A stretch of 64,000 nt of DNA. It comes from Haliotis rufescens. Lineage: Eukaryota. The notes under the pieces are model-generated. The model was not told where the DNA came from and did no database searches. It worked only from the letters and a program-made list of their open reading frames with translations. Where the stretch lies: positions 59,024,001 through 59,088,000 of the forward strand of contig NW_025963890.1 of the NCBI RefSeq assembly GCF_023055435.1, given 5' to 3'. Positions 18,649-64,000 of this stretch are shown here, in pieces; the first letter of the stretch is position 1; the number at the start of each line of letters is the position of its first letter. Made by a program: the position numbers and the translations under genes.

Positions 18649-21445
18649 TCACCATTTGTTTGAGGAGATGGTGCAGCCTTGTTTAACAAGATGTCGAGCT
18701 CGCGTGCGTGTGTTCCGAAGACGTCTCCAGGCATAGTCGTAAGTGAGTAGTGCTGACTGGACATTTTTCTCGTGACTCTTGACAGTTTTGTATTCCGCCC
18801 TTCGCACGAAGACACTACAACCTTGAGACACAACTTTGTTCACCTGGGCTTTTACAATCCTGTGTCCAAGGAGGCGGGTTTCCCAGTTAGCATTGTCCGG
18901 AAGATGGCGGCAGAGTGTGTTCAAGACCACGAACCTTCGCCCATTGCGGCTCACCTGAACACCGATTTCATAGAGAGCTGGCTTGCTCTTCATAGAGTTG
19001 AAGATTTTCTTGGTTCTGAAGCCAGTTTTAACATCACCCCAGCGTTTCTCCCACCTGTCTGCGTCTGGTTTCGCTGGGAGCCTAGGGGAGATAACTTTGA
19101 TCCAGGGTGACCAGTCCATATCTTTCAGGGCGAAGTTGTCCTCTGGGATCTCCTCTCTATTCAGCAATGTTTTCTTGCTTGGTGTCTGTGTAGAAAAATG
19201 GATGGACAGATTCTTACAATAATAGCATCAACTTGCATGACCAACACCCAGCATGGTAACGCATTATGGTGTGATTTGGACGAGAGTGAGTGAGTGCGTA
19301 GAGTTTTACACCTCTGTTACCAGCATTCAACCATTTCATATGACATTTTGTACCCATGTGCCCATGTACCCTTAACTTGGCGTGGTGTGGCAAAGCGTTT
19401 AACCACGAGGATACCTTCCTACCCTGGTGTGAATCGACTAATAAGTAGCTATGTAATAACATGATGATTATTTTGTGTACAAAAAAGGGATTTCTGTGAA
19501 AACGTATTGACAACAATGTGTAAATATATCCTTTGATTTCTTCATGTCTTACCTTTATCTTTGTAGGCTTTGGTTTCCTGATGGGAGTAGGTTTTGATTT
19601 TCTGGTTGTGATTTTTCTTGCAGGTTTTGACAAGACTGGAACGGTATCGACTTTCTTGCCACGAGAGTTTGTCACCTTCTTCGACGTTGAAGTGACGGTT
19701 GTTCCATCGCGTAGGGCAGTAAACATTCCTTCCACGTCTTCACTCAGAGAACCGTCAGCACGGCGGGCTCGAACCTCTTTCTCATAGGCCTAAAGTAGTA
19801 GATAAATTTGTTTATGTCATTATGCATAATAAGCCTAGAAGCCCATGGAAATTGAACACATTTGTAAGCATATTTACCCTATACCCACATTTACCATGTA
19901 TACTGAAAGATCAAGCGTGATAACTCCGTAACTGTGCATTTCACAGATGTTCAGTCCTGAGTGGTCCTGAGTGGTCAGTTCAAATTAAATGAAACCATAT
20001 TGATGCAGGGAAGAGTACAATACGATCTGTTGTTCCTTGCTTCAAAATTGAAGTGTCTTACATGTATTCCTCGTGGTCATGTGTACCATGTTGAGTAACC
20101 TACTCGAAACTGAATGACGAGTTGTTTGTCCCGGAAAGATGTAATGGACATCACCAATTCAGGGCGGAAACATAACCCTGTGTTATAGATCGTAGCTTAT
20201 TCTCTAAATATGAAAGAATGAAAGTACAGGTTGTTTGAACCCTAGCTGTTGGTCAGCTGTTAGCTTACCTCCAACATATCTGCCCCCTGCTCCCTGTAGC
20301 AGATGGCCATGAGGAGATCAAACACGTTGGAGAAGTCTTTGAGTTGAAGATAGCGGCCTCCCGACTCCGCTGATATGGTTGTGTAGAATGGTATACCTCC
20401 ATATCCACACTCAACACCGTAAATCTTGACTCCCTGTGGAAAATACATATAAAAGGTCAACGCTAGAGTGAGTGAGTGAGTTGGGTTTAACGCCGCTTTT
20501 AACAGTATTCCAGTTATATCACGGCGTGTCAGCTTAATGTGGGAGGAAAGACCGCAGTGATGCAGGTCTCGGACGTTTACCACTTCGGTGAAACCCACGA
20601 GCACGGGTATGGTGCTGACAAACATAGAAATATAATCAGGTAGAACCGGGATTCGAACCCACAATCATAGGTTTCTGGCCTGCGTAAGGGACGCAACTCT
20701 GAATATCTGCAAATCGCGGCGCATTAGACGACTGAGCCACCCCTGCGCCCGTAAACGCCAGAGAACAATGAGAATCGATGATCTGCCGAAAAAGATTCCA
20801 TTTAGCTTAACGGGCATCATAATCGTGAAAATTACCTGAATGGATTAGTGAAAAACAGTGATGACACCAGGTGTTCGCCAAAGGAATGTAAGCTATTGCT
20901 GAGTACATATGAAGCGGTTTTTTCCACATGATGTTGTGGTGGAGAGAACAAATGATGTAGCTTTTAGATTATTAAAATCTGTAAGAAAGTCAACTCACCA
21001 TGTTGGTCAGTGTTTTTAGCTCTTTCCTCCAATCTATCATCAGTTTATTTCCACTGAAGCTTGGTGCGTGTGGTGAATCATCCCCAATAAGGACAATAGC
21101 CCGATTTGAACCCGGCGTCCATGACAGTTCCTCCCCAATTTGTCTGAGAACGAGTTCGTAACATTCGCCTCCGTCTCCTCCGCCCCCTGTGCTTCTGACG
21201 TTTTTAACGAATTTGCAGAGTTCATTGACGTCAGTGGAAAAGTCGACCCACTTGGTTGCTTCACTTCCATCACAGTAGTCACCGTGTGCGAAGACGGCGA
21301 TTCTGATGGCGGGGATGTCAGCCTGGAGCCGCTGTATCATGTCCTGGAGTCGACCTCGGACTTCGGCCAAACAGCTGCTCATGGAGCCGGTTGTGTCAAA
21401 GGAGAAGACAATCTCCGGAAGTCCACCAGGAGGAAGCAAAGCCAT
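18649..21445 (-). CDS. VWA + Lys-rich linker + ET/GIY-YIG-like protein, copy 1 (divergent), 461 aa; coding exons 21445-20999, 20433-20269, 19789-19553, 19185-18649
   Basis: All-phase-0 GT-AG introns join four open frames: MALLPPGGLPEIVFSFDTTGSM (MIDAS DxTxS), GDDSPH, K-rich exon, then DWSPW..PALYEIG..WETRLL..YDYAW. The same structure recurs in six paralogues. Non-coding exon 1 is at about 22050-22146. Confidence 0.88.
20469..20750 (-). mobile_element. SINE family B in an intron of copy 1
   Basis: Full-length reverse complement; imperfect TSD AACGC(T/C)AGAG. Confidence 0.9.
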
Positions 21446-21626
21446 GTTGAATCTGTTGAAATATTCAAAACAACTGAAGACTATGCATACGGGAAGTGTT
21501 ACTTTTGAAATTGATACAGTTTTATAACCATTAACTCAACTGATTGGTCAATACTTGTTGTCTGGGGACGAAACAGATACCGTTCACCTTCGTACCTTCG
21601 ATCTCAAAGCATCTGTCTTGTTATTT

Positions 21627-21713
21627 TGTCATCATCATCATCATTATCATCATCATCATCATCATCATTAAAACATAAAATGCTGCAAAGAGGGTTAGGG
21701 TGATCCTGGCATC

Positions 21714-21746
<33 letters not shown>
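21627..21746. repeat. (ATC)n and (AAT)n microsatellites
   Basis: Directly visible. Confidence 0.8.
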
Positions 21747-21758
21747 TATTATACTATA

Positions 21759-21917
21759 TACTGTCTCCGAGCCGACCAGTCCTCGTATTAGCCCCTGAAT
21801 GCCGAGCGCCAGCAAGTACCATCTTTAAACGTCTTTTGATATGACGCGGTCGGGGATCGAACCCCGGACCTCCCGCTCTCCTGGCGGACCCTCTACCACA
21901 ACACCACGGAGGCGGCC
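21759..21917 (-). mobile_element. tRNA-derived SINE family C (Meta-domain-like), partial
   Basis: Reverse-complemented B box GGGATCGAACC; CCGAGCCGACCAGTCC...ATGCCGAGCGCCAG body shared with 23570-23951. Confidence 0.75.
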
Positions 21918-22142
21918 ATTAATCATAAGGACACATCCTAACAAGGTATGGTAACAGCACAATACATCTCGAATTGGTTTTATAAAATTTAAGTTTTCCT
22001 TGAAAATAAATTTTAATTATGTTGGTCGTAAGTTGTATATTAGTGTTACCTGTTTATAACCAGGCTGTTGTATTAAGTGATGTACTTGGGTAACTCTCTC
22101 TCAACCTGTCCTTGCACAGTACAGCTACGTCGATATCAGTAG

Positions 22143-22445
22143 ACTGATCCTAGTCGGCCACTCGGACAGCTTTTATACTGGCTGGGAGGCGACGATATCA
22201 CATGACGCGGATTTGTGTCGGTAGCAAGTTTAGACATGCCTTGTGACTGTTTTAGACCTGATCGATGATTTCGTAAACTAGATCAAAAACATGTTCCCAA
22301 ACTCAAACCGCTCACTCTCTCTCGAACACATCCTTTACTTCCATATTCCCTACACTGTCTGAACAACACTTGTTGGTTGTGTGTGATAGGAACTAGTAGT
22401 GTGCGGAGTTGGCAAATAGTTCATGACGTCACTGCTTCGCGGAAT
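22143..22445 (-). promoter_or_regulatory. Promoter of copy 1: Inr, TATAAAA (22171-22177), p53-type element (22222-22241), CRE+GAS-like composite (22424-22445)
   Basis: The motifs sit at equivalent positions in all paralogues, upstream of a conserved AG|GTAAC donor. Confidence 0.65.
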
Positions 22446-23227
22446 ATCTAGCAATAGCGCTTGGAGGTGGCTGATTACCCAATGCTCAATCAGCAGTTTT
22501 ACAGCCGACAGCGGTAATGTTGTTGGGTCGATGGCAATGTGGACACTCTGTGTATATTATTCCGAATTTTTGTATTATTGTATTATTCCAACTCAGTAGT
22601 GGATTTGGGTAAAATAGATCCTGCTACTAGCACACAATGACATGTCATTACTGAGATTAAATATTTCTGAATAGTCAGGTCGTCATGTTTTATTGCTTAC
22701 AAATTAATGTTAAGTGTATGGGTATCAGTGAGTTTACTACGAGTTTAATATGGTTTTTAATAGTTTAAGATTGATTGGATGATATTGTGAAAGTTTTATA
22801 TGTTTGTTAAATTGCAAAAAGCGATCAAGTTTTTTAAATATATAGTCTTTTTGTGACTTATGCTGAATATGACCAGACCACAGTTTGTATAAAGTTTGTG
22901 ACATTTGGTGTGAAACTGGGGTTGGTGTGTTAGCTTCCTGTACTCAGAAAAAGAGCTGGCTAAGCAAGCCAAACTTTGTGATTTTATTGCAGCTTCATGG
23001 CCAGACTGAGAACACGTATACACGTCATGGCTGATGAATGCCTCGTTATTCAAAAACATATAAACCGTTACTACAGAAATCTATGAAAATAGATATAAAA
23101 AAATTGGTTGTGTTTAACCTAATCACACCTGACCTTTCGTTCGAGTTAACAAGGACCAAGACATTATCCCCTTCAGGTCGGTCACTGTTATTTGCACCTC
23201 TCGCCAGGTCTACTTCACTGGAATAAA

Positions 23228-23503
23228 GGGGGCACGGGTGGCCCAGTCGTCTAAGGCGCCGCGATTCGCTGTGCAGAGTTGCGTCCCTTAGGCACGCCAG
23301 AAACCTATGATTGTGGGTTCGAATCCCGGTTCGCCCCGATTATGTTTCTAGGTTTGTCAGCACGATACCCGTGCTCGTGGGTTTCACCGAAGTGGTAAAC
23401 GTCTGAGACCTGCATCACTTAGGGCTTTCCTCCCACATTAAGCTGATACGCCGAGATATGACTGGAATAATGTTAAAAGCGGCGTCAAACCCAACTCACT
23501 CAC
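23228..23503 (+). mobile_element. SINE family B
   Basis: Full-length; TSD TCA(C/T)TGGAATAAA. Confidence 0.92.
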
Positions 23504-23569
23504 TCATTGGAATAAACCGTTACAGTAAGGCATTACAGCGAGATGGATAATAACGTAACACGTAGGCTC

Positions 23570-23951
23570 GAGGTGAGGTGAGGTGAGATGGGGTGAGGTG
23601 AAGTGAGGTGAGGTGAGGTGGGGTTTAACGTCTGCTTGTACTAGCCAGGACTAATACCGGTTTCATAGTGCTAGCTCACTCATATACCATGCCGCTGTTT
23701 GACATGAATACCCCACTCAGACACAGTATACTGACTCCGAGCCGACCAGTCCTTGTTTTAGCCCCTTAATGCCGAGCGCCAGACAGGGCGCCGACCAGTT
23801 TAAAATCACCTTAATGCCGAGCGCGAGGTAGGGTAACAACATGTGCCGTCTTTTAACGTACTTAGTATTTGGTATGACGCGGCCGGGTATCAAGTCATCG
23901 ACCTTACGCTCTCCGGGCAGACTGTTTATCCACTAGACCACGGAGGCGGTC
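23570..23951 (-). mobile_element. SINE family C with (ACCTC)n tail
   Basis: tRNA-like head at the right end, body shared with 21759-21917, (GAGGT)n at the left end. Confidence 0.75.
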
Positions 23952-24022
23952 ACGAGGCAAGCGACGCAATGTGTTAAACACGAACTGTCGCGAATGTGAT
24001 GATGGAGATATGTTTTGTGAAT

Positions 24023-24222
24023 TTGTTTGTTTGTTATTTAACGCCGCACTCACCAATATTTCAGCTATATGACGGCCGTCTGTAAATAGACGAGTCTGGA
24101 CCAGACAAGTCAGTGATTGACATCATGAGCATCGATCCACGCAATTGGGATACGATAACATGCATGAACCAAGTCAGCGATCCTGACCACCCGGTCCCGT
24201 TGGTCACCTCTTACGACAAGCA
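24023..24222 (-). mobile_element. Family D element
   Basis: Reverse complement of 13920-14115 including the (AAAC)n tail. Confidence 0.8.
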
Positions 24223-24551
24223 TAGTCTATAAAACGCGAACGCAAGAGAATAACCAGTCTAGAATATCAGTCGAAACAGATTCCTGTTTGCGTAAAATGC
24301 AAAATAGCCATGAACATTATATGAAATGGAACGTATATATGTATTACCTTGTTGCAAGCTAGACTGCATCCAATGGGATTCAGAGTCGAGTCGTTACCCA
24401 GTATATCATTTGTAGCAACGCCGTTAGGAAATAGGGTTCGATTGCTTTGTTATTCTCAGACCACAGTGAATATTGCTGATACAGAATAGACACAGAAACA
24501 ACTACACAAAGCGTTAGACAAAGGGATAAGAGACGAATTAACCCACAATAA

Positions 24552-25240
24552 GTTCGTACTGCTTCTTGCTTCATACTGCATCAAACTTCGTACTGCTTCA
24601 TGCTTCGTTCTGCTTCATGCTCCGTTCTGCTTCATGCTCCGTACTGCTTCTTGCTTGGTACTGCTTTATGCTTCGTGCTGCCTGATGCTTCGTACAGTTT
24701 CGCGCTTCGTTCTGCTTCATGCTTCGTACATCCTCGTATTTCGTTCTGCTTCGTGCTTCGTGTTGCTCCATGCTTCGTACTGCTTCGTGCTTCTTGCTTT
24801 GTACTGCATCTTGCTTTGTACTGCTTCATGTTTCGTACTGCTTCTTGCTTCATACTGCTTAATGGTTCGCACTGCTTCATGCTTCGTAATTCTATGCGCT
24901 TCGTGTTGCTTCATACGTGATACTTCTTCGTGCGTCTCGCTGTTTTGTGCCTCATACTGCTTCATGCTTCTTGCTTCGTACTGCTTCATGCTCGTACTAC
25001 TTCGTGCTTCGTACTGCTTCATGCTTCTTGCTTCGTATTGCATCGAGCTTCGTACTGCCTCTTTGTTGGTTAAGCTTCATGCTTCGTGCTTATGCTTTAT
25101 CTTTCGTACTGCTTCGAGCTTCGTACTGTTTCATGCTTTGTACTGCTTCATGCTTCGTACTGCTTAATGATTCATACTGCTTCATGCTTCGTATTGTTTC
25201 GAGCTGCTGCGTTCTTCGTAATACTTCGTACTTCGTAGCT
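24552..25240. repeat. Degenerate ~17-bp minisatellite (CTTCGTACTGCTTCATG)n
   Basis: Directly visible; produces spurious ORFs in several frames. Confidence 0.9.
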
Positions 25241-25261
25241 TGTTGCTATTGTGCTTGACTA

Positions 25262-28290: not shown

Positions 28291-30225
28291 CTATACTTTG
28301 TCTGATGAAATTGTGCTGCGTTGTTTGAACACATGTCGAGCAGTAGATCGTGAACTCCTCAGACGCCTCCAAGCGTAGTCATAGGACTTTATCATGGAGG
28401 CTGTTTTGACGTGGTATGATGCTCTTCTGTACACCACCCTCCGCACATAGACACTGCAGTCCTGAGACACAACGTTGTTCACCTGAGCTCTGACAAGTTT
28501 GTTTCCAAGAAGCCGTGTTTCCCAATTAACATTATTGGGAATATAGTGGCAGAACTTACTGAATACCACACACCTTCGTCCGTACCGGATGGACTGAACA
28601 CCGATCTCATAGAAAGCTGGCTTATTGTTCTCAGACTTGAAGATTGTCTTCTTTCTGAATCCAGGGTTGGCACCCCGTCTTTTCTCCCATTGTGCATCCT
28701 GTTTGAGTGGGACGTCAGGGGAGATAACTTTGACCCACGGTGACCAGTCCATGTTTCTCAAGCTGAAGTTGTTCTCAAAGACTTCCTCTCTTCTCAGAAG
28801 AGGTGTCACAAACTTTGTAGGTTTCTGGAATAATACATTATATATAATGAATCTATGAAGATATGGTCATACCTTTAAAGTTCCAAAAGGGTATACCTTT
28901 AATCGATAAATGCGATCGTTATCAGCAGTATGAGAAAGAAATGAACAACTGTGTATGTCATTATTACTTGGAAAGAAACGTATCTGAAATATACCTTCAG
29001 TGATTTAGTTCCTGGTCTCCTGGTGGATTTAGGTTTGGCCTTTCGAACTGCTGTGATTGATGTGGTTTTCTTTAAGGTGGGGATCTTCACATCTTTCTTA
29101 CTGCAACCGGTTGTGGTCTTCTTTGGCGATGAAAGTGAGGCTACTCCATCACGTAGTGAGGTAAACATTCCTTCCATGTCTTTGCTGAGGGCACCTTCAC
29201 CACAACGAGTTCGAACTTCTTTCTCGTACACCTGAAATGACATATACAAATGTCAAAACAGGAATACACGGAAAACATATTCGGTAAGGAAAGTAAACTA
29301 AATATATTATGAGAAAAGTATATATGTTTATAAACAATATAATCGAAGAGCAAACTTACATCAAACATATCTGCCCCGTTCTCCCTGTAGCAGATGGCCA
29401 TGAGGAAGTCGAAGACATTGGAAAAGCTGTCGAGTTGAAGATGGCGTCCCCCTGTCTCCTGTGACATTCTCTTGTAGAATTCCATGCTGCCACATCCGCG
29501 CTCTACCCCATATATCTTCACTCCCTGGAAACGAATGGGATGTTTCAATGTATTTGCTGTACATTTGACTTATGTTAGCATGATGCAATTCTGAATGAAC
29601 TCGATTTGTATTATCCCCAGCTGACAATCAAACTCAAAATGCAATTCGACATTGTATTGAGAATTTGAATGTCTTGAAAAATAGCATTTCTTAGTGATGT
29701 TAAGAATTGAATGTCTTGAAAAATAGCATTTCTTAGTGATGTTAAGAATTTAATTTGGCTAAAGTAAAATTAGCTCACCATTTTATTGAGAGTTTGAATC
29801 TCCTCCCTCCAGTCTATCTTGAGTTTGTTGTCGGGGTAGTCTGGTTCATGGGGGTTGGCGTCCCCGATCATGACGAGGGCACGATTGGATCCGGGTGTCC
29901 ATGACAACTCCTCCCCAACTTGTCTGAGAACGAGTTCGTAACATTCGTCCGAGTCTCCGCCTCCAGTGCTGCTGACGTTGTTTACAAAGTCACATAGTTC
30001 CTTAACGTCTGTGGAAAAGTCGATCCACTTTGTGATGTAGTTGTGTTTGTCACAATAGTCCCCGTGTGCGAAGACGGCAATTCTGATGGCGGGGATGTCA
30101 GCCTGGAGCCGCTGTATCATGTCCTGGAGTCGACCTCTGACTTCAACGAGACAGCTGCTCATGGAGCCGGTTGTGTCAAAGGAGAAGACATTCTCCGGAA
30201 GTCCACCAGGAGGAAGCAAAGCCAT
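28291..30225 (-). CDS. VWA-ET-like protein copy 2 (type A), 460 aa; coding exons 30225-29779, 29524-29360, 29231-28995, 28824-28291
   Basis: Open spliced frame with canonical splice sites; paralogous to copies 1 and 3-7. Confidence 0.88.
29665..29748. repeat. 42-bp tandem duplication private to an intron of copy 2
   Basis: TTGAATGTCTTGAAAAATAGCATTTCTTAGTGATGTTAAGAA x2; single in copies 4, 5 and 6. Confidence 0.85.
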
Positions 30226-35236: not shown

Positions 35237-37122
35237 CTATACTTTGTCTGATGAAATTGTGCTACCTTGTTTGAACACATGTCGAGCAGTAGATCGTGAA
35301 CTCCTCAGACGTCTCCATGCGTAGTCATAGGACTTTATCATGGAGGCTGTTTTGGCATGGTATGATGCTCTTCTGTACACCACCCTCCGCATATAGACAC
35401 TGCAGTCCTGAGACACAACGTTGTTCACCTGAGCTCTGACAAGTTTGTTTCCAAGAAGCCGTGTTTCCCAATTAACATTATTGGGAATATAGTGGCAGAA
35501 CTTACTGAATACCACACACCTTCGTCCGTACCGGATGGACTGAACACCGATCTCATAGAGAGCTGGCTTATTGTTCTCAGACTTGAAGATTGTCTTCTTT
35601 CTGAATCCAGGGCTGGCACCCCGTCTTTTCTCCCATTGTGCATCCTGTTTGAGTGGAACGTCAGGGGAGATAACTTTGACCCACGGTGACCAGTCCATGT
35701 TTCTCAAGCTGAAGTTGTTCTCAAAGACTTCCTCTCTTCTCAGAACTGGTATCACAAACTTTGTTGATTTCTGGAATAATATAGTGTATTATGAGACTCC
35801 TTGACATGATCATAGCCTAACACAATGAAAACAAGAATTAAACACTGTGATCGCGCATTTAAAAACAATTGAGAGAATATTTTACCTTGAACGATTTCTT
35901 TCTTGGCTTTCTGATGGATTTAGGTTTGGGCTTTCTGACTCTTTGAATGGATGTTATTTTCTTTAAGGTGGGAACCTTCACATCTTTCTTAGCGGCACTG
36001 ATTGTAATCGTTGTCTTTGGTGGAGAAGGGGAGACAATTCCATCACGTAGGGATGTAAACATTCCTTCCATGTCTTTGCTGAGGGCACCATCAGCGCAAC
36101 GGGCTCGAACCTCTTTCTCGTACACCTGATAAGGGCAAATAATCATTGATGAAAGGAGTTTTATAACAACGAATATCACACAATTAAAATGACAGCCGCT
36201 CTACGGATTTTAAAGTGGTGCAGTTATTTCAACTTACATGAAGAATCTCTGCCCCCTGTTCCCTGTAGCAGATGGCCATAAGGAAGTCAAAGATGTTTGT
36301 AAAGTTTTCCAATTTAAGATGCCGACCTCCTGTCTTGTTGGAAATGGTTTCGTAGAACGTCGTATTGCCCGTGTCGCACTGAACTCCATAGATTTTCACT
36401 CCCTGAAATTAATATTAATATATAGAATAAGTGAATGAACATCGTTGTGTCGAATTTACGGTTGTTGTGGCGAAGCAAAAGCAAGGTCCCTGCACCTTTC
36501 TTATTCATTCATCATTTTCGTGTTAAAACCCGGATAACTTTACTCGGATACATTTACGTGAGTCCCTTCAATGTTGACTCAAAGGTGTTTGACTGGTGAG
36601 TGTCGTGTTCTTATTATTTGATTTATGTCTGAAAATGACCACAACCTGGAAATTAATAGAAATCCAACACACCATTTCATTCAGAGTTTGTGTCTCCTTT
36701 CTCCAGTCTATTTTTAGTTTATTGGCTTTGAAGTTTGGTTCGTGGGGCTTGTCGTCCCCGACGACGACGAGAACACGGTTAGATCCTGGTGTCCATGACA
36801 ACTCCTCCCTAACTTGTCGGAGAACAAGCTCGTAACACTCGCCGTAGTCGTAATCGCCTCCTGTATCTTCAACGTTCATGACGAAGTCGCAGAGCCCTTT
36901 GACGTCAGTGGAGAAGTCGATCCATTTTGTGACATATGTGGATTTGGTGCAGTAGTCACCGTGTGCGAAGACGGCGATTCTGACGGCGGGGATGTCAGCC
37001 TGGAGCCGCTGTATCATGTCCTGGAGTCGACCTCTGACTTCGGCGAGACAGTCGCACATGGAGCCAGTAGTGTCAAAGGAGAAAACAATCTCCGGAAGTC
37101 CACCAGGAGGAAGCAAAGCCAT
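35237..37122 (-). CDS. VWA-ET-like protein copy 3 (type B), 462 aa; coding exons 37122-36673, 36402-36238, 36125-35886, 35770-35237
   Basis: Open spliced frame; distinct VWA loops (MCDCL, YCTKSTY, DTGGDYDYGE). Confidence 0.88.
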
Positions 37123-43090: not shown

Positions 43091-44986
43091 CTATACTTTG
43101 TCTGATGAAATTGTGCTGCCTTGTTTGAACACATGTCGAGCAGTAGATCGTGATCTCCTCAGACGTCTCCATGCGTAGTCATAGGACTTTATCATGGAGG
43201 CTGTTTTGGCATGGTATAATGCTCTTCTATACACCACCCTCCGCACATAGACACTGCAGTCCTGAGACACAACGTTGTTCACCTGAGCTCTGACAATTTT
43301 GTTTCCAAGGAGCCGTGTTTCCCAGTTGACATTATCAGGAATGTTGTGGCAGAATTTACTGAATACCACACACCTTCGTCCGTACCGGATGGTCTGAACA
43401 CCGATCTCATAGAGAGCTGGCTTATTGTTCTCAGACTTGAAGATTGTCTTCTTTCTGAATCCAGGGTTGGCACCCCGTCTTTTCTCCCATTGTGCATCCT
43501 GTTTGAGTGGAACGTCAGGGGAGATAACTTTGACCCACGGTGACCAGTCCATGTTTCTCAAGCTGAAGTTGTTCTCAAAGACTTCCTCTCTTCTCAGAAG
43601 AGGTGTCACAAACTTTGTAGGTTTCTGGAATAATACATTATATATAATGAGTCTATTTAGATATGGTCATACCTTTAAGGTTCCAAAAGGGTATAGCTTT
43701 AATCGATAAATGCGATGGTTATCAGCAGTATGAGAAAGAAATGAACAACTGTGTATGTCATTATTACTTGGAAAGAAACGTATCTGAAATATACCTTCAG
43801 TGATTTAGTTCCTGGTCTCCTGATGGATTTAGGCTTGGCCTTTCGAACTGCTGTGATCGATGTAGTTTTCTTTAAGGTGGGGATCTTTACATCTTTCTTA
43901 CTGCAACCGGTTGTGGTCTTCTTTGGCGATGAAAGGGGGGCTACTCCATCACGAAGTGAGGTAAACATTCCTTCCATGTCTTTGCTGAGGGCACCTTCAC
44001 CACAACGAGTTCGAACTTCTTTCTCGTACACCTGAAATGACATATACAAATGTCAAAACAGGAATACACGGAAAACATATTCGGTAAGGAAAGTAAACTA
44101 AATATAACTTTATTATGAGAAAAGTATATGTTTATGAAGAATATAATCGAAGAGCAAACTTACATCAAACATATCTGCCCCGTGCTCCCTGTAGCAGATG
44201 GCCATGAGGAAGTCGAAGACATTGGAAAAGCTGTCGAGTTGAAGATGGCGTCCCCCTGTCTCCTGTGACATTCTCTTGTAGAATTCCATGCTGCCACATC
44301 CACGCTCTACCCCATATATCTTCACTCCCTGGAAACGAATGGGATGTTTCAATGTATTTACTGTACATTTGACTTATGTTAGCATGATGCAATCATGAGT
44401 GAACTCGATTTGTATCATCCCCCAGCTGACAATCAAACTCAAAATGCAATTCGACATTGTATTGATAATTTGAATGTCTTGAAAAAGAGCATTCTTAGTG
44501 ATGTTAAGAATTAATCTGGCTAAAGTAAAATTAGCTCACCATTTTATTGAGAGTTTGAATCTCCTCCCTCCAGTCTATCTTGAGTTTGTTGTCGGGGTAG
44601 TCTGGTTCATGGGGGTTGGCGTCCCCGATCATGACGAGGGCACGATTGGATCCGGGTGTCCATGACAACTCCTCCCCAACTTGTCTGAGAACGAGTTCGT
44701 AACATTCGTCCGAGTCTCCGCCTCCAGTGCTGCTGACGTTGTTTACAAAGTCACATAGTTCCTTAACGTCTGTGGAAAAGTCGATCCACTTTGTGATGTA
44801 GTTGTGTTTGTCACAATAGTCCCCGTGTGCGAAGACGGCAATTCTGATGGCGGGTATGTCAGCCTGGAGCCGCTGTATCATGTCCTGGAGTCGACCTCTG
44901 ACTTCGACGAGACAGCTGCTCATGGAGCCGGTTGTGTCAAAGGAGAAGACTATCTCCGGAAGACCACCAGGAGGAAGCAAAGCCAT
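43091..44986 (-). CDS. VWA-ET-like protein copy 4 (type A), 460 aa; coding exons 44986-44540, 44328-44164, 44031-43795, 43624-43091
   Basis: Open spliced frame with canonical splice sites. Confidence 0.88.
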
Positions 44987-49660: not shown

Positions 49661-51558
49661 CTATACTTTGTCTGATGAAATTGTGCTCCCTTGTTTGAAG
49701 ACATGTCGAGCAGTAGATCGTGATCTCCTCAGACGTCTCCATGCGTAGTCATAGGACTTTATCATGGAGGCTGTTTTGGCATGGTATGATGCTCTTCTGT
49801 ACACCACCCTCCGCACATAGACACTGCAGTCCTGAGACACAACGTTGTTCACCTGAGCTCTGACAAGTTTGTTTCCAAGGAGCCGTGTTTCCCAATTAAC
49901 ATTATCGGGAATATAGTGACAGAACTTACTGAATACTACACACCTTCGTCCGTACCGGATGGACTGAACACCGATCTCATAGAGAGCTGGCTTATTGTTC
50001 TCAGACTTGAAGATTGTCTTCTTTCTGAATCCAGGGTTGGCACCCCGTCTTTTCTCCCATCGTGCATCCTGTTTGAGTGGGACATCAGGGGAGATAACTT
50101 TGACCCACGGTGACCAGTCCATGTTTCTCAAGCTGAAGTTGTTCTCAAAGACTTCCTCTCTTCTCAGAAGAGGTGTCACAAACTTTGTAGGTTTCTGGAA
50201 TAATACATTATATATAATGAATCTATTTAGATATGGTCATACCTTTAAAGTTCCAAAAGGGTATAGCTTTAATCGATAAATGCGATCGTTATCAGCAGTA
50301 TGAGAAAGAAATGAACAACTGTATATGTCATTATTTTTTGGAAAGAAACATGTCTGAAATATACCTTCAGTGATTTAGTTCCTGGTCTCCTGATGGATTT
50401 AGGCTTGGCCTTTCGAACTGCTGTGATTGATGTGGTTTTCTTTAAGGTGGGGATCTTCACATCTTTCTTACTGCAACCTGCTGTGGTCTTCTTTGGCGAT
50501 GAAAGTGAGGCTACTCCATCACGTAGTGAGGTAAACATTCCTTCCATGTCTTTGCTGAGGGCACCTTCACCACAACGAGTTCGAACTTCTTTCTCGTACA
50601 CCTGAAATGACATATACAAATGTCAAAACAGGAATACACGGAAAACATATTCGGTAAGGAAAGTAAACTAAATATAACTTTATTATGAGAAAAGTTTATG
50701 TTTATGAACAATATAATCGAAGAGGAAACTTACATCAAACATATCTGCCCCGTGCTCCCTGTAGCAGATGGCCATGAGGAAGTCGAAGACATTGGAAAAG
50801 CTGTCGAGTTGAAGATGGCGTCCCCCTGTCTCCTGGGACATTCTCTTGTAGAATTCCATGCTGCCACATCCACGCTCTACCCCATATATCTTCACTCCCT
50901 GGAAACGAATGGGACGTTTCAATGTATTTACTGTACATTTGATTTATGTTAGCATGATGCAATCCTGAGTGAACTCGATTTGTATCATCCCCCAGCTGAC
51001 AATCAAACTCAAAATGCAATTCGATATTGTATTGAGAATTTGAATGTCTTGAAAAAGAGAATTTCTTAGTGATGTTAAGAATTTAATCTGGCTAAAGTAA
51101 AATTAGCTCACCATGTTATTGAGAGTTTGAATCTCCTCCCTCCAGTCTATCTTGAGTTTGTTGTCGGGGTAGTCTGGTTCATGGGGGTTGGCGTCCCCGA
51201 TCATGACGAGGGCACGATTGGATCCGGGTGTCCATGACAACTCCTCCCCAACTTGTCTGAGAACGAGTTCGTAACATTCGTCCGAGTCTCCGCCTCCAGT
51301 GCTGCTGACGTTGTTTACAAAGTCACATAGTTCCTTAACGTCTGTGGAAAAGTCGATCCACTTTGTGACGTATTTGTGTTTGTCACAATAGTCCCCGTGT
51401 GCGAAGACGGCAATTCTGATGGCGGGGATGTCAGCCTGGAGCCGCTGTATCATGTCCTGGAGTCGACCTCTGACTTCGACGAGACAGCTGCTCATGGAGC
51501 CAGTTGTGTCAAAGGAGAAGACTATCTCCGGAAGACCACCAGGAGGAAGCAAAGCCAT
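49661..51558 (-). CDS. VWA-ET-like protein copy 5 (type A), 460 aa; coding exons 51558-51112, 50898-50734, 50601-50365, 50194-49661
   Basis: Open spliced frame with canonical splice sites. Confidence 0.88.
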
Positions 51559-52114: not shown

Positions 52115-52559
52115 ACTGATCTTACTCAGCAGCACGCTCGCTTTTATACTGGCTGAGAGGCGATCAATGGGAGCTCGCTGAGACTTGTCTTGGTTGGCAT
52201 GTTTGGACCTGTTCCGTGGTTGTGTTTAGACGAGCAGGCGATGTTCATGTCTATGCGTTTCAATACATGCTTCTGTTTGGAAAGAAACAAAATCAACTGA
52301 TTAATCATTTGAAGATACATGTAATCGGGGAATTATTAAGAACCTTGGACTTTGGGAAACGTGCTGTTTTTTAATGTCTCATATTCTGAATCGACACGTG
52401 AAACATACGTACAGAAACAGATGAACATACTCTCTCAAACACATTATTTATATCAATGCTCCTTACACTGTCTGTCGGAAGATATTTTGGTCGAAAACGG
52501 TACATAGCCGGAATGTACAGAGTTTGTATATTGTACATGACGTAACTGCTTCGCGGAAT
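52115..52559 (-). promoter_or_regulatory. Promoter of copy 5: TATA 52142-52148, p53-type half-sites 52181-52214, TGACGTAA+GAS-like 52538-52559
   Basis: Motifs conserved across paralogues. Confidence 0.6.
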
Positions 52560-56233: not shown

Positions 56234-58129
56234 CTATACTTTGTCTGATGAAATTGTGCTACCTTGTTTGAACACATGTCGAGCAGTAGATCGTGATCTC
56301 CTCAGACGTCTCCATGCGTAGTCATAGGACTTTATCATGGAGGCTGTTTTGGCATGGTATGATGCTCTTCTGTACACCACCCTCCGCACATAGACACTGC
56401 AGTCCTGAGACACAACGTTGTTCACCTGAGCTCTGACAATTTTGTTTCCAAGAAGCCGTGTTTCCCAATTAACATTATCGGGAATATAGTGACAGAACTT
56501 GCTGAATACCACACACCTTCGTCCGTACCGGATGGACTGAACACCGATCTCATAGAGAGCTGGCTTATTGTTCTCAGACTTGAAGATTGTCCTCTTTCTG
56601 AATCCAGGGTTGGCACCCCGTCTTTTCTCCCATTGTGCATCCTGTTTGAGTGGAACGTCAGGGGAGATAACTTTGACCCACGGTGACCAGTCCATGTTTC
56701 TCAAGCTGAAGTTGTTCTCAAAGACTTCCTCTCTTCTCAGAAGAGGTGTCACAAACTTTGTAGGTTTCTGGAATAATACATTATATATAATGAGTCTATT
56801 TAGATATGGTCATACCTTTAAGGTTCCAAAAGGGTATAGCTTTAATCGATAAATGCGATCGTTATCAGCAGTATGAGAAAGAAATGAACAACTGTATATG
56901 TCATTATTGCTTGGAAAGAAACATGTCTGAAATATACCTTCAGTGATTTAGTTCCTGGTCTCTTGATGGATTTAGGTTTGGCCTTTCGAACAGCTGTGAT
57001 TGATGTAGTTTTCTTTAAGGTGGGGATCTTTACATCTTTCTTACTGCAACCTGCTATGGTCTTCTTTGGCGATGAAAGTGAGGCTACTCCATCACGAAGT
57101 GAGGTAAACATTCCTTCCATGTCTTCGCTGAGGGCACCTTCACCACAACGAGTTCGAACTTCTTTCTCGTACACCTGAAATGACATATACAAATGTCAAA
57201 ACAGGAATACACGGAAAACATATTCGGTAAGGAAAGTAAACTAAATATAACTTTATTATGAGAAAAGTATATGTTTATGAAGAATATAATCGAAGAGCAA
57301 ACTTACATCAAACATATCTGCCCCGTGCTCCCTGTAGCAGATGGCCATGAGGAAGTCGAAGACATTGGAAAAGCTGTCGAGTTGAAGATGGCGTCCCCCT
57401 GTCTCCTGTGACATTCTCTTGTAGAATTCCATGCTGCCACATCCGCGCTCTACCCCATATATCTTCACTCCCTGGAAACGAATGGGATGTTTCAATGTAT
57501 TTACTGTACATTTGACTTTTGTTAGTATGATGCAATTCTGAATGAACTCGATTTGTATTATCCCCAGCTGACAATCAAACTCAAAATGCAATTCGACATT
57601 GTATTGAGAATTTGAATGTCTTGAAAATAGCATTTCTTAGTGATGTTTAGAATTTAATTTGGCTAAAGTAAAATTAGCTCACCATTTTATTGAGAGTTTG
57701 AATCTCCTCCCTCCAGTCTATCTTGAGTTTGTTGTCGGGGTAGTCTGGTTCATGGGGGCTGGCGTCCCCGATCATGACGAGGGCACGATTGGATCCGGGT
57801 GTCCATGACAACTCCTCCCCAACTTGTCTGAGAACGAGTTCGTAACATTCGTCCGAGTCTCCGCCTCCAGTGCTGCTGACGTTGTTTACAAAGTCACATA
57901 GTTCCTTAACGTCTGTGGAAAAGTCGATCCACTTTGTGACGTAGTTGTGTTTGTCACAATAGTCCCCGTGTGCGAAGACGGCAATTCTGATGGCGGGGAT
58001 GTCAGCCTGGAGCCGCTGTATCATGTCCTGGAGTCGACCTCTGACTTCGACGAGACAGCTGCTCATGGAGCCGGTTGTGTCAAAGGAGAAGACTATCTCC
58101 GGAAGACCACCAGGAGGAAGCAAAGCCAT
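56234..58129 (-). CDS. VWA-ET-like protein copy 6 (type A), 460 aa; coding exons 58129-57683, 57471-57307, 57174-56938, 56767-56234
   Basis: Open spliced frame with canonical splice sites. Confidence 0.88.
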
Positions 58130-58664
58130 GTTGAATCTGTTGAAATATTCAGAACAATTGAGTGTACATGTATACAAGAAGTTTTACTTTTGAAATTGAT
58201 ACAGCTTTATACCCATTAATTCTGGCAGTGTAAATACTTATAAAAATGTTTTGAATGTTAGTTTTAATGTTTATATTCTCAAGTAAAAAAATATATTTCA
58301 ATTTTTAACAAAGTCAATTTAGAAACAAGAATGTTGGTTTCTTTAAAATATTTGCAAAGGTTATTTCCGTAAGTATGCTATAATTTATTTTTATAGATAT
58401 AGAAAAATGTTTTCACGTTATAAATACATATGATTTAATAATTTACGCTTTTCTTATAAAAAAGATATAGATGTGTAAGTTATTTGGAGACGATTTCCTC
58501 GCTATCAGACCAGTACTATATACACCATCACTGTTAATATGTTCCTCAAGTTACCTGTTTTGAATGGTGAGAGTAGTTATATAGTTCTTGTGCTATATTT
58601 CCACGCTGCTGTCAGACGTAGTTTATATCTATTCAAGTCTTTCAACTGTAGTGTGTGTCACTAG

Positions 58665-59090
58665 ACTGATCTTACTCAGCAGCCCGCCAGCTTTTATACT
58701 GGCTGAGAGGCGATCAATGGGAGCTCGCTGAGACTTGTCTTGGTTGGCTGAGACCTGTTCCGTGGTTGTGTTTAGACGAGCAGGCTATGTTCATGTCTAT
58801 GCGTTTCAATACATGCTTCTTTTTGGAAAGAAACAAAATCAACTGATTAATCAGTTGAAGATACATGTAATCGGGGAATTATTAAGCACCTTGGACTTTG
58901 GGAAACGCGCTTTCTTTGAATGTCTCATATTCTGAATCGACACGTGAAACATACGTACAGAAACAGATGAACATACTCTCTCAAACACATTATTTATATC
59001 AATGCTCCTTACACTGTCTGTCGGAAGACGGTATATAGCCGCAATGTACAGAGTTTGTATATTGTAAATGACGTCACTGCTTCGCGGAAT
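58665..59090 (-). promoter_or_regulatory. Promoter of copy 6: TATA 58692-58698, altered p53-type element 58731-58760, CRE+GAS-like 59069-59090
   Basis: Motifs conserved, except that the middle p53 half-site is lost. Confidence 0.55.
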
Positions 59091-61485
59091 GATTTACTCG
59101 CGCAGCAAAATATCGATAATATTCTCAGTAATAAAGCACATGAATCTTGTTGATGTTTCGGTGGCATAACTATTGTCGTTAATTGATAGGGTGTATGTAC
59201 TATGCTGGAAATCATCATCCCTTCCAGTTGATTATTCTGTGATTGTGTAAACCATCATGAGGTGTGAATACACATTGTTGTGTTCCATTTGGAGAATACT
59301 TTGTCGTGTCAAACATTCCCCGAGAAGCGTTGCTTTGTTGTAATTTCGAGAATATATGTCGGTCCTAAATGAAAAACACTATTTGATATGTATCACAACA
59401 ATGAACACTTTCTCTATGATAGTTTTGTACTATAGGGCGTTTTTAATTACTTTGTGCACGGATTCGCAGGCCATTTTTAACACATATAAAAACCCATGAT
59501 GTTTGTATCTTTGAAAGTGTGTGTCAATGTATTTCAGGAATAGAAACAGTTGTTTTCATAATCAATATAGGACGCGCGAAGTATCTTTTTTTTAAATGAA
59601 GAGACACCTTTAATTTTCTTTCTATTTCACGAGACTGCAGCTGATAATACTTTTCAGAAAGCTCTATTTCCTTACATGTAAAATATATTTACTTTTATTT
59701 CCATCCCCGAGAATACGTTTTAAAAATATATCAATAAATTGTTATTCATGATAACAACATTGACCAGTTTTCATGACATATATTAATAATGCTCTTGCGA
59801 CCAGATTTGATGTGAAGTATTAGCTGTATTACCGGGGCCAGTTTCCTTGATATATACACCTGGAAAAGAATTTAAGCATTACATGTTTCATGTTTTCATA
59901 TATCCTGAACTGCCGTTCATCTTTAGGAAATATCTACACATGACATTGATTTCATTTTGATGAAAGTTGAAGAAAACGCCGATGTCTGCTATGCAGTTAG
60001 TTCAAGAGAATGTCATATCGTAAGATACAAGGAAGTTGATGAAGCAATTGAAAGGGTAGTCAAATAATTATTTCCACAGAACAGTTACAAAACATGTTAT
60101 TAGATTATCGATTTCAGTTTCTGTATTTCAGTATGGACATGTCGCTTTGTATAAAATAAAGGGGTTTCGTAAGAACATTAATACCAGTTGCGATTTTGAA
60201 ACAAGCAGTGTTTTCCATGATATCTATCGGAAACAAAATAAATGTTGCTCCGTTTCTTAGCATGAACACTTTCTGGTCCTTTAAAAGTTATAAAACGTAT
60301 GATTTATAATATGTTGATATACATCTTCCGACATGGAAAGGTGGTGATTGTACATTCAGGAAAAGCGTTCACAACTTGAGGAACATATCTCTCAAACACG
60401 TTGTTTACCTTCGTTGCTCCTCACACGCGAGTCTAGGACTCGGTTTCATTGAGTAGCGCAGTGTAGTGAAGCGAGTTTAGGAAGAATGTGTGACGATTTT
60501 ACTTCGCGGATTGTTATGTTCAGTCATCAGTTCTATTGTTAATACTACAACATTACACACTGATTGAATTTGGCAGTGTCTGTCAATTTATTTTAGTAAT
60601 AGAAACAGTTGTTTTCATAATCAATATAGGATGCGAAGTAACTTTTTGTAAAATGAAGAGACACATTTAATTTTCTTAATATTTCACGAGACGGCAGCTG
60701 ATAATACTTTTCAGAAATTTTTCTTTCTTTACATGTAAAATATACTTACTTTTATTTCCACCCCCGAGAATACGTTTTAAAATATATATCAATAAACCAA
60801 GTTATTCAAAATAACATTTACTACGCGGGTTGTTATGCTCACTCAGCAGTTCTACTGTCAATGCAACAATATTACACACCGATATAATTTTCAAACTCAA
60901 TATATTAGATGCAGAAAACAAGAAAAGCAAATCACAGCAACTTTTGACTGAATTATGCGTGCAAAATGTGCGATAGATACATTGTACAAATTGAGATGAA
61001 ACATGAATATATTTTAAAGAATATATGTGAATTACGAACATACATAAGATGCAATTTGGTCCTATTATTTATGTCATAACGTTATTTTTTTAACCTAATG
61101 CATGTATTCGGGTATTTATATTTGCAAGATTATAAAACTGCGCATCATCTCAAGGTGGGGGACAGCCCAATGCATTTCAGATCGTGGATGTTAACATAAG
61201 TATTTCATTATAAGCGAAAAGGAATAGCAAATCACTGCAAAATTTGACTATAATAATGCATGCAAAATGTGCAGTAAATACATTGTACACAATTGAGATG
61301 AAACATGAGTACATTCTATATTCTTTTGACTATGTAAGTTAAAAGTATGTGAATTACGAACATACACAATATGTATTTTGGCCCCTGTGTGTGTGTGATA
61401 TGAGTGAATGTTGCTATATGTCTATGTCAGGGCGCAATAAATGAAACTGAATCGAGAAAAGGGAAAGTTTATGTCTTCAGTGTGA

Positions 61486-61650
61486 GTGAGTGAGTGAGTA
61501 TGGTTTTACGCCGCTTTTAGCAATATTCCAGCAATATCACGGTGGGGGACACAAGAAATGGGCTTCACAAATTGTACCCATGTCGGGAATCGAACCCGGG
61601 TCTTCGGCGTGACGAGCGAACGCTTTAACCACTAGGCTACCCGACCGCCT
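61486..61650 (-). mobile_element. SINE family A, insertion private to one array unit
   Basis: TSD TCTTC(A/T)GTGTGA at 61474-61485 and 61651-61662. Empty sites in other units (e.g. ~34738, ~49164, ~55734). Confidence 0.93.
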
Positions 61651-62160
61651 TCTTCTGTGTGAAACAAAGGCCACGTTTTGGGTAGGAGGATGCACTCTTG
61701 TAAGTAGACATTTTCAAAGAAAAAAAAGTATATGCAAGTCTTTTTAGTTTGTTTTATTCATTCCTATTCTGATATTGCACATGTTAAAATGAAGTATAGA
61801 TTGTAGGTCAATGAATGATATGAATATATATACATCGTAATATGAACAATCAAATATATACAGCGTTTCACATAACAGAAAATAACGTTCATCTGTCCAT
61901 CATTCGGTAGAGCACACACATTCTCAGTCACGCACTTTAATGACACATCATGCCCTCTCATTCACATAAAATATCTGGCAAGTTGTATGATATGAGATTC
62001 GATCTCGATGTTTTTTTAAAGTTATATACTTATGAATTTGGCCTCTTATGTGCCAGTGTTTTCCAGAGTGTCCTTTGATATATGGCATGTTAGAAAAACG
62101 TCCATATCTCTGTATCTGTTAGCATATATCAAAGAATGTGTGTCAATGTTCAGAAACATT

Positions 62161-64000
62161 CTATACTTTGTCTGATGAAATTGTGCTGCCTTGTTTGAAC
62201 ACATGTCGAGCAGTTGATCGTGATCTCCTCAGACGCCTCCATGCGTAGTCATAGGACTTTATCATGGAGGCTGTTTTGACGTGGTTTAATGCTCTTCTAT
62301 GCACCACCCTCCGCACATAGACACTGCAGTCCTGAGACACAACGTTGTTCACCTGAGCTCTGACAATTTTGTTTCCAAGAAGCCGTGTTTCCCAATTAAC
62401 ATTATCGGGAATATAGTGACAGAATTTACTGAATACCACACACCTTCGTGCGTACCGGATGGACTGAACACCGATCTCATAGAGAGCTGGCTTATTGTTC
62501 TCAGACTTGAAGATTGTCTTCTTTCTGAATCCAGGGTTGGCACCCCGTCTTTTTTCCCATTGTGCATCCTGTTTGAGTGGAACGTCAGGGGAGACAACTT
62601 TGACCCACGGTGACCAGTCCATGTTTCTCAAGCTGAAGTTGTTCTCAAAAACTTCCTCTCTTCTCAGAAGAGGTGTCACAAACTTTGTTGATTTCTGGAA
62701 TAATATAATGTATCATGAGACTCCTTGACATGATCATAGCCTAACACAATGAAATCAAGAATTAAACACTGTGATCGCGCATTTAAAAACAATTGAGAGA
62801 ATATTTTACCTTGAACGATTTCTTTCTTGGCTTTCTGATGGATTTAGGTTTGGCCTTTCTGACTCTTTGGATGGATGTTATTTTCGTCAAGGTGGGAACC
62901 TTCACATCTTTCTTAGCGGCACTGATTGTAATCGCTGTCTTTGGTTGAGAAGGGGAGACAATTCCATCACGTAGGGATGTAAACATTCCTTCCATGTCTT
63001 TGCTGAGGGCACCATCAGCGCAACGGGCTCTAACCTCTTTCTCGTACACCTGATGAGGGCAAATAATCATTGATGAAAGGAGTTTTATTATGACGAATAT
63101 CATAGAATTAAAATGACAGCCGCTCTTCGGATGTTAAAGTGGTGCAGTTATTTCAACTTACATGAAGAATCTCTGCCCCCTGTTCCCTGTAGCAGATGGC
63201 CATAAGGAAGTCAAAGATGTTTGTAAAGTTTTCCAATTTAAGATGCCGACCTCCTGTTTTGTTGGAAATGGTTTCGTAGAACGTCGTATTGTTCGTGTCG
63301 CACTGAACTCCATAGATTTTTACTCCCTGAAATCAAAATCAATAAATGGAATAAGTGAATTAACATCGTTGTGTCGAATTTACGATAGTTGTCGCGAAGT
63401 AAAAAAAGGTCCCTGCACCTTTCTTATTCATTCATCATTTTCGGTTTAGTTGAAGCCCGAATAACTTTACTCGGATACATTTACGTGAGTCCCTTCAACG
63501 TCGACTCAAAGGTGTTTGACTGGTGAGTGTCGTGTTCTTATTATTTGACTTATGTCTGAAAATGACCACAACCTGGAAATTAATAGAAATCCAACACACC
63601 ATTTCATTCAGAGTTTGTGTCTCCGTTTGCCAGTCTATTTTTAGTTTATTGGCTTTGAAGTTTGGTTCGTGGGGCTTGTCGTCCCCGACGACGACGAGAA
63701 CACGGTTAGATCCTGGTGTCCATGACAACTCCTCCCTCACTTGTCGGAGAACAAGCTCGTAACACTCGCCGTAGTCGTAATCGCCTCCTGTATCTTCAAC
63801 GTTCATGACGAAGTCGCAGAGCCCTTTGACGTCAGTGGAGAAGTCGATCCATTTTGTGACATATGTGGATTTGGTGCAGTAGTCACCGTGTGCGAAGACG
63901 GCGATTCTGACGGCGGGGATGTCAGCCTGGAGCCGCTGTATCATGTCCTGGAGTCGACCTCTGACTTCGGCGAGACAGTCGCACATGGAGCCAGTAGTGT
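62161..64000 (-). CDS. VWA-ET-like protein copy 7 (type B), 5'-partial at the window edge; coding exons >64000-63600, 63326-63162, 63049-62810, 62694-62161
   Basis: Near-identical to copy 3; the frame is open to the window end. Confidence 0.85.

Follow-up and report, generated by a model that had tools for sequence, protein, structure and literature searches.

What does a protein do that joins an intracellular von Willebrand factor A (VWA) domain to a domain built like a nuclease? The question is raised by a 64,000-nucleotide stretch of the abalone Haliotis rufescens (contig C112, NCBI NW_025963890.1; G000:C112:59024001-59088000), called the window here and drawn from a genome of 1.33 Gb. An open reading frame (ORF) listing combined with motif mapping identifies in it seven intact, co-oriented paralogues on the minus strand, each encoding a VWA domain, a basic linker and a basic C-terminal domain. 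Modelling predicts a GIY-YIG fold for this last domain, and sequence and structure comparisons link it to the clade of PF19239, the domain of the plant EFFECTOR OF TRANSCRIPTION (ET) proteins. The canonical catalytic set of that fold looks largely lost. We give about an even chance to the reading that the protein is a nucleic-acid-binding adaptor whose C-terminal domain is a pseudo-nuclease.

The seven genes are built to a single plan. Their last exons end at 18649, 28291, 35237, 43091, 49661, 56234 and 62161 (copies 1 to 7), and blastn exon mapping with per-exon translation resolves each copy into four coding exons: 447-450 nt from the ATG, 165 nt, 237-240 nt and 534-537 nt including the stop. 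The introns lie in phase 0 throughout, with AG/GT at each boundary, and no exon of the seven copies contains an internal stop. Exons were translated and searched singly, and full-length analyses were made on database proteins, with P0152 representing copy 1. Exons 1 and 2 encode the VWA domain (149 and 55 residues), which is followed by a linker of 79-80 residues rich in Lys, Pro and Thr and by a C-terminal domain of 177-178 residues. The isoelectric point (pI) is 4.5-6.1 for the VWA exons, 10.3-10.6 for the linker and 10.5-10.6 for the last exon, which holds 35-37 Lys and Arg residues. A sequence-only reading of this DNA had proposed at least seven co-oriented paralogues of identical exon structure, with the order VWA, basic linker and basic C-terminal domain of about 175 residues, and the exon mapping and pI values agree with it on each point. 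It had also proposed that a signal peptide is lacking; the protein opens directly in strand β1 of the VWA domain (model residues 10-17), which leaves no room for one, although no dedicated predictor was run.

Copy 5, a type A gene of 460 residues, has direct transcript support. It lies at 49661..51558 on the minus strand, and its exons encode the N-terminal part of the VWA domain (51112-51558), the C-terminal part of the VWA domain (50734-50898), a helical stalk with the basic linker (50365-50601) and the ET-type GIY-YIG-fold domain with the stop (49661-50194). Contigs were taken from four public runs, belonging to four studies and carrying four organism labels; the RNA nature of these runs was guessed, and contigs without introns were in practice taken as transcripts. 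The joints omit ~50899-51111 in all four runs, ~50602-50733 in three of the four and 50195-50364 in all four, and the three skipped stretches each read GT..AG on the minus strand. Depth in the intron bins is zero or near-zero, and neither intron 1 nor the sequence upstream of the ATG exon has any coverage. Because all three introns of copy 5 are skipped, the VWA exons and the last exon are joined in mRNA, which answers in its favour one of the two points on which the sequence-only reading had depended. Whole relatives of 471-492 residues are likewise encoded on intronless Logan contigs of 1.5-2.0 kb.

Copy 1 (LOC124141879), the most divergent of the seven, lies at 18649..21445 on the minus strand with exons at 20999-21445, 20269-20433, 19553-19789 and 18649-19185 (stop included), and encodes 461 residues. 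It matches the 461-residue NCBI model XP_046366016.2 (P0152) at 97.6-100% identity per exon in tblastn, and its last exon contains all the motif strings quoted in the sequence-only reading: WSPWIKV, PALYEIG, WETRLL, GCSVFVRRA and LLTYDYAWR. One transcript-like contig reaches 12 nt upstream of an ATG and then continues with 80 unmatched letters. A 30-nt consensus of this unmatched part occurs once in the window, at 22055..22084 on the minus strand and ~0.6 kb upstream of the copy 1 ATG exon, where it marks part of a 5' non-coding exon that probably exists near copy 1.

The case for a GIY-YIG fold rests on structure prediction. The AlphaFold2 (AF2) model of the copy 2 last exon, made for a 172-residue ORF (the exon encodes 177 residues) with a 62-sequence alignment, has a predicted local distance difference test score (pLDDT) of 95.7 and a predicted template modelling score (pTM) of 0.90. 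Its strands at residues 65-72 and 80-87, helices at 96-101 and 104-115, strand at 119-126 and helix at 130-140 follow the β1-β2-α1-α2-β3-α3 order of the GIY-YIG fold. In an exhaustive structural alignment against 48,161 PDB chains, the seven best matches all belong to GIY-YIG nucleases. T4 EndoII leads (2wsh; Z 7.1 over 113 residues including the N-terminal extension, with a root-mean-square deviation (rmsd) of 3.3), followed by Hpy188I (3oqg; Z 4.4), PD-T4-3 (9u75; Z 4.2), I-TevI (1ln0; Z 4.1), the UvrC N-terminal domain (1ycz; Z 4.1), Eco29kI (3mx4; Z 3.6) and the AtGRXS16 N-terminal domain (2lwf; Z 3.3). Unrelated folds begin at Z 3.2, below these seven chains. Each Z score is middling when taken alone, and it is the unbroken run of seven chains from a single superfamily that carries the argument. 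The last exon is therefore predicted to have the GIY-YIG fold, and the proposal that it is GIY-YIG-derived comes out well from the modelling that had been called for.

Other searches return less. Foldseek gives nothing at E<=0.001, with Hpy188I, T4 EndoII and Eco29kI as its top rows, and sequence searches of the PDB with the last exon, with the 62-sequence profile and with full-length P0152 found no meaningful match. The abalone domain has its fold in common with T4 EndoII, the UvrC N-terminal domain, I-TevI, Hpy188I and Eco29kI, but identity to GIY-YIG nucleases of known structure is 7-12%, the canonical Glu and Asn are lacking and the YIG motif is degenerate. Among the viral structures of BFVD the best match to the abalone domain is M1I060 (E 5.6e-5, over 170 columns as against 113 residues for T4 EndoII), and further unnamed viral matches are M1HHK8, M1HWP8 and M1H415. 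PADLOC gave no match, and NCBIfam none for P0152.

Within the GIY-YIG superfamily, sequence and structure comparisons link the domain to the ET-type clade. Copies 1, 2, 3 and 7 were scanned against PF19239, whose gathering score is 21.4. The last exon of copy 1 scores 31.3 bits, over profile positions 107-161 only, copy 3 scores 16.6 bits, below the cut-off, and copies 2 and 7 have no match; the last exons of copies 4-6 are 96-100% identical to that of copy 2. PF19239 matches 7 of 83 relatives, and precomputed Pfam annotation lists it for P0001, P0181 and P0194. A profile built from seven abalone domains, including paralogues of 23-28% identity on other contigs, reaches further: out of 1.84 billion representatives it detects 223 clusters at E<=1e-3. 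It matches XP_053393955.1 (P0132) of the clam Mercenaria mercenaria at 2e-15 in seven stretches. In this clam protein PF19239 in turn aligns over positions 2-158 of 163 at 1.3e-45, the UvrC model aligns over its GIY-YIG motif (positions 11-49) at 4.9e-4, and the protein keeps the pattern GVYE...VVYTGKAKRLLQRL...E..LL..YSYAWN.

A structure search of the Atlas with residues 835-991 of P0132 connects the plant and mollusc families. The nearest cluster is 'Protein EFFECTOR OF TRANSCRIPTION 2-like' (TM 0.72, 143 aligned residues), which has 101 members from Streptophyta, all of them (100%) with PF19239. The next full-domain match is a mollusc VWA cluster of 478 residues (TM 0.68, 142 aligned), and bacterial GIY-YIG clusters align with the clam repeat only over a core of 101-115 residues. 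On the evidence of these neighbours, PF19239 corresponds to the ET domain of plants and its extended form is shared by the mollusc VWA family, the link to plants resting on this single bridge protein. Both the copy 1 score and the bridge thus favour the earlier suggestion of an ET-like domain. The clam protein is itself of unusual architecture: its 991 residues comprise an N-terminal transposase-type helix-turn-helix (HTH) and seven tandem PF19239 repeats. Unlike the abalone family it has no VWA domain and keeps the UvrC-like set GIY...YxGK...R...E...YAWN; like that family, it carries the Y/F-E and β3 Arg signature in all of its repeats. The Atlas search with the last exon of copy 1 returned low-score bacterial clusters only and is uninformative, as is a PF19239 profile search of the abalone genome, which found no match there and none in 14 control genomes either.

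A comparison of the abalone proteins with plant ET1/ET2 and HRT separates a common domain from different proteins. Both have the same extended domain of ~145-163 residues with an N-terminal Trp extension, a GIY-type strand ending in Y-E, a β3 Arg and an (F/Y)DYAW motif. In the abalone, however, the domain is C-terminal, after a VWA domain and a basic linker, the family is an animal one (Lophotrochozoa), the YIG Tyr and Gly and the Glu and Asn are not conserved, and copies 2-7 do not reach the PF19239 cut-off. The ET family is described as plant-specific and is defined by C-terminal, Cys-rich ET repeats that bind zinc and DNA (PMC6585611). The abalone proteins end 25 residues after YDYAW, with no Cys-rich ET repeats and no further Pfam match. 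Since these repeats are lacking, they share a domain with the plant ET proteins and are not their orthologues.

What has become of the active site within this fold? Residue frequencies were taken from 107 full-length relatives, and a second set of 161 domain matches agrees with them. The GIY Tyr is Y in 81% and F in 14%, and it is kept in all seven window copies. The YIG Tyr is Y in 50% and F in 43%, being F in copies 2-7 and L in copy 1, and the YIG Gly is replaced by K or R. The candidate α1 Arg is R in 45%. Conserved acidic residues are lacking from helix α3, where copies 2-7 have T/A and copy 1 has V/Q, and the Asn after YAW is N in 7% and Arg in all seven copies. On these frequencies the canonical GIY-YIG catalytic set looks largely lost. 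A different set of residues is fixed: the β1 Glu directly after the GIY Tyr (E356), the β3 Arg (R411) and W436, the Trp of YDYAW, are present in 100% of the 107 sequences, and a pair of N-terminal Trp residues comes close to invariance. The occurrence of the Glu and Arg in all repeats of P0132 marks the pair as a signature of the clade rather than a substitute specific to the VWA proteins. The sequence-only reading had proposed a sensor joined to a nucleic-acid effector. Its structural half stands, and its functional half, still a proposal, is in part contradicted, as no canonical position except the GIY Tyr is conserved among the 107 relatives.

The VWA domain is supported by both Pfam and fold, as had been proposed for an intracellular domain of this type. 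Exon 1 scores 25.2 bits on PF00092 (cut-off 23.8) in copy 1 and 25.9 bits in copy 3; the corresponding PF00092 score of type A copies is 19.5 bits, but on PF25106 VWA_4 (cut-off 27) they reach 28.2 bits. PF00092 matches 17 of 83 relatives, with a best E of 1.1e-12. The AF2 model of P0152, built on the 107-sequence alignment, has a mean pLDDT of 83.5, with residues 10-198 mostly at 80-97 and residues 238-285 disordered. Compared with the PDB, it returns at least 500 hits at E<=0.001, among them VWF A3, collagen VI N5, integrin β I-like domains and TFIIH p44; VWF A3 and p44 (4wfq, rmsd 3.0) match at TMt 0.72. Model and matches together describe a Rossmann-like α/β VWA fold.

The metal ion-dependent adhesion site (MIDAS) of this domain is complete and invariant or nearly so in the 107 sequences. 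It consists of D17-T-T19-G-S21, a DxTxS variant, with T86 (98%), D91 and D122. S15, D17, T19, S21, M22, H54, D56, Y57, G89, D91, E94, C95, Y96, E97, G121, D122 and H126 are invariant in this set, which spans three phyla. The MIDAS face is thus invariant rather than variable, and the differences between paralogue types sit in loops adjoining these residues. Beside the MIDAS lies a shell of H54, D56, C58, E94, C95, E97 and H126 (P0152 numbering), also invariant or nearly so in the 107 proteins and encoded in exon 1 of all copies (51112-51558 in copy 5, for example). Judged from its His, Asp, Cys and Glu residues, this shell could be a second metal site, perhaps of two His and two Cys, or a small-molecule pocket. 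Two known systems that work on DNA, TFIIH p44/GTF2H2 and Ku70/80, have an intracellular VWA domain like the abalone proteins. The p44 domain is paired with zinc fingers, however, and that of Ku with a β-barrel ring; neither is joined to a GIY-YIG domain. The fold match to p44 is generic to VWA domains, the extracellular VWF A3, collagen VI and integrin β domains scoring equally.

The family extends well beyond the window. A search with P0152 finds at least 881 proteins at E<=0.001. Named relatives come from gastropods, bivalves and a chiton, from the brachiopod Lingula and from the nemerteans Lineus and Tubulanus, and no animal outside the Lophotrochozoa is present among ~150 named entries among the matches listed. 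Orthologues of the same architecture, at ~45% identity, thus occur in three phyla (Mollusca, Brachiopoda and Nemertea). A local profile search detects the C-terminal domain in 139 of 142 proteins added by searches and cluster look-ups. All relatives are named 'uncharacterized', 'VWFA domain-containing' or, from similarity, 'Ariadne-like RING finger protein R811'. The domain also occurs with other partners, a B-box in P0137 (a weak match) and the HTH of P0132, and it is N-terminal in P0119 and P0133. Searches with the C-terminal region alone (P0002, and P0255 of Lingula) returned only the query, which reflects a word-index limit and not absence.

In the abalone genome, a second tandem cluster of four to five copies lies 140 kb past the window at C112:59228404-59256157 (L005, L006), with last exons 86-95% identical. 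In addition to these, a copy at 59255841-59256157 looks broken and matches in two pieces only. Distant paralogues are found on contigs C556, C390 (three) and C135, with C-terminal domains of 29-34% identity, and the 'at least seven' genes of the sequence-only reading therefore grow by four to five copies on the same contig and by at least five more on three others. In the C556 paralogue (L001) and in the 842-residue LOC124127625 (P0006/P0173), recorded on a contig corresponding to C390, this C-terminal domain comes after a VWA exon, and some other distant paralogues carry long Ser/Lys-rich extensions. The C390/C135 type (L002 at C390:901000-910000, L003 and L004) keeps FDYAWN, with its Asn retained, and its last exon is a single long one (LOC124127625); the N-terminus is extended by a long stretch rich in Ser, and the added tail, rich in Lys, contains PTKKAK-like repeats.

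Selection and exchange have both left their marks on the array. dN/dS, the ratio of nonsynonymous to synonymous substitution rates, is 0.1-0.35 in every exon and comparison, which indicates purifying selection on all domains. Gene-wide positive selection on the VWA domain was considered and rejected (omega 0.18-0.25), as were readings of the genes as pseudogenes or artefacts, given intact frames, purifying selection and transcripts. By sequence the copies fall into type A (copies 2, 4, 5 and 6, with 96.8-100% mutual identity), type B (copies 3 and 7) and copy 1, which stands alone. The remaining type A genes, all on the minus strand, are copy 2 (28291..30225; 460 residues; exons 29779-30225, 29360-29524, 28995-29231 and 28291-28824), copy 4 (43091..44986; exons 44540-44986, 44164-44328, 43795-44031 and 43091-43624) and copy 6 (56234..58129; exons 57683-58129, 57307-57471, 56938-57174 and 56234-56767). 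The type B genes on the same strand are copy 3 (35237..37122; 462 residues; exons 36673-37122, 36238-36402, 35886-36125 and 35237-35770) and copy 7 (62161..64000; exons 63600-64000+, 63162-63326, 62810-63049 and 62161-62694), whose exon 1 is incomplete because the window stops at 64000.

Types A and B are 73-83% identical in exons 1-3 (dS 0.5-1.3) but 96-97% identical in exon 4 (dS 0.06-0.13). The similar tract runs on the minus strand over 35237..35789 in copy 3 (type B) against 28291-28843 in copy 2 (type A), at 96.7% across exactly the initial 553 nt of the unit, and recurs at 62161-62700; its flanks in the intron and the 3' region are 83-89% identical. This pattern in the alignments is that of gene conversion between the paralogue types, limited to exon 4. 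Units 4 and 5 share 98.4% identity along their whole 6.57 kb, so their duplication is very recent.

The window also holds features outside the array. An ORF at 11318-11872 (+), upstream of the array, has a zf-RVT domain (E 4.3e-9) and is a fragment of a non-long-terminal-repeat retroelement. A Ser/Pro-rich open frame of 386 residues at 1853-3013 (+) has no Pfam match and could be either a chance frame or an exon belonging to an unrelated gene. Between copies 1 and 2, a 177-residue open frame at 24634-25167 (+), repetitive, rich in Cys, Leu, Ala and Ser and without a Pfam match, is most likely a tandem DNA repeat and not a gene. A run of N occupies window positions 8028-8173.

How might such a protein work? 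The adaptor reading begins with an intracellular protein of ~460 residues, in which an acidic VWA domain, a conserved helical stalk, a basic linker and a basic GIY-YIG-fold domain follow one another. The C-terminal domain and the linker would bind nucleic acid, most likely nuclear DNA. The domain would serve as a binding module, a pseudo-nuclease that keeps the fold and the Glu (β1)/Arg (β3) pair, and not as a canonical metal-dependent cutter; it is taken as such because its catalytic set has decayed. The VWA metal site would bind an acidic residue of a conserved partner protein, the loops around the MIDAS that differ between paralogue types would tune the choice of partner, and the whole would act as an adaptor that tethers or senses its partner on nucleic acid. 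Nuclear localization through the basic linker is our guess from its composition, and a role in genome surveillance, stress or defence is suggested by the way the family has expanded in tandem within the lineage and undergone gene conversion.

The same parts could be assembled into a working enzyme. The C-terminal domain would then be a nickase or nuclease acting through the GIY Tyr and the Glu/Arg pair, the acidic VWA domain would restrain it, and a ligand at the VWA metal site would release it, in antiviral defence, DNA damage or cell death. Several observations speak for such a sensor-effector nuclease, and some of them weigh against a pure binding module. The closest solved analogue, T4 EndoII, is a nicking enzyme, and the ET2 domain of plants has been reported to nick DNA and thus to be active (Ivanov 2008, as cited in PMC6585611). 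All seven copies have the GIY Tyr, the Arg of WETRLL, a possible counterpart of the catalytic Arg, is retained too, and the Glu and Arg, invariant across 107 to 161 sequences, could form a non-canonical active site. The alignment from β2 to α1 is moreover uncertain because of indels, and where residues lie relative to the cleft was judged from the sequence and the secondary structure alone. Further points in favour are the charge dipole between the acidic VWA domain and the basic C-terminal domain and the tandem expansion with variable loops around the MIDAS. Against an enzyme of this kind stand the lack of conservation at four canonical positions (metal-binding Glu, Asn, YIG Tyr and YIG Gly), the dN/dS below 0.35 with no gene-wide signal of an arms race, and the full-length model, which shows no confident packing of the domains (pTM 0.53). 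We regard a released nuclease as possible but doubtful. A more specific proposal, that this is a lophotrochozoan surveillance system in which a ligand of the VWA metal site frees the ET-type domain to nick or mark DNA through Glu, Arg and Tyr, is unlikely; it would resemble prokaryotic vWA-coupled effectors, have its effector domain in common with the plant ET epigenetic regulators and owe its diversity in abalone to tandem duplication and exon-limited conversion.

The ligand of the basic domain might also be something other than nucleic acid. A high pI does not by itself specify nucleic acid, the catalytic residues are lost, and intracellular VWA domains, such as that of TFIIH p44 among the fold matches, are often protein-protein modules, so that the C-terminal domain could serve in the cytoplasm, in a scaffold or in trafficking, with an acidic protein, a phospholipid or a poly-anion as its ligand. 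All solved structural relatives are DNA enzymes, however, the domain's other partners are DNA-related, like the transposase-type HTH of P0132, and the Lys-rich linker resembles a nuclear localization signal or a DNA-binding tail; we consider such a ligand quite unlikely. Finally, the array could be selfish, derived from a homing-type or transposon-borne GIY-YIG element with no function for the host, or a set of decaying pseudogenes. GIY-YIG domains are frequent in mobile elements, the clam relative joins the domain to a transposase-type HTH, and there is retroelement debris within the window. Yet the seven frames are intact, under purifying selection and of conserved intron structure, orthologues of the same architecture persist in three phyla, and the copies form tandem arrays and are not dispersed, in units that have neither terminal repeats nor a transposase, all of which makes this origin very improbable.

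We found no paper on the VWA-linker-GIY-YIG architecture or on ET-type domains in animals, and a phylogenomic survey of GIY-YIG domains from 2006 does not list this family; the sequence-only reading, which knew of no characterized protein with this architecture, is in line with that search. Both domains are already known individually, and the automatic annotation of Pfam puts PF19239 on a few relatives. The ET-type GIY-YIG domain has so far counted as an invention of plants, tied to DNA nicking and methylation. The family described here makes it a conserved, expressed and expanded part of animal genomes, with at least 881 relatives in three phyla, all of them labelled uncharacterized. It offers a testable entry to an unstudied family in commercial molluscs, including abalone, oysters, scallops and mussels, and a case for the repurposing of a nuclease fold in which the catalytic residues decay while a different pair of residues stays invariant. 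Should a role in antiviral defence or DNA damage prove true, these proteins would constitute a new module of invertebrate innate immunity.

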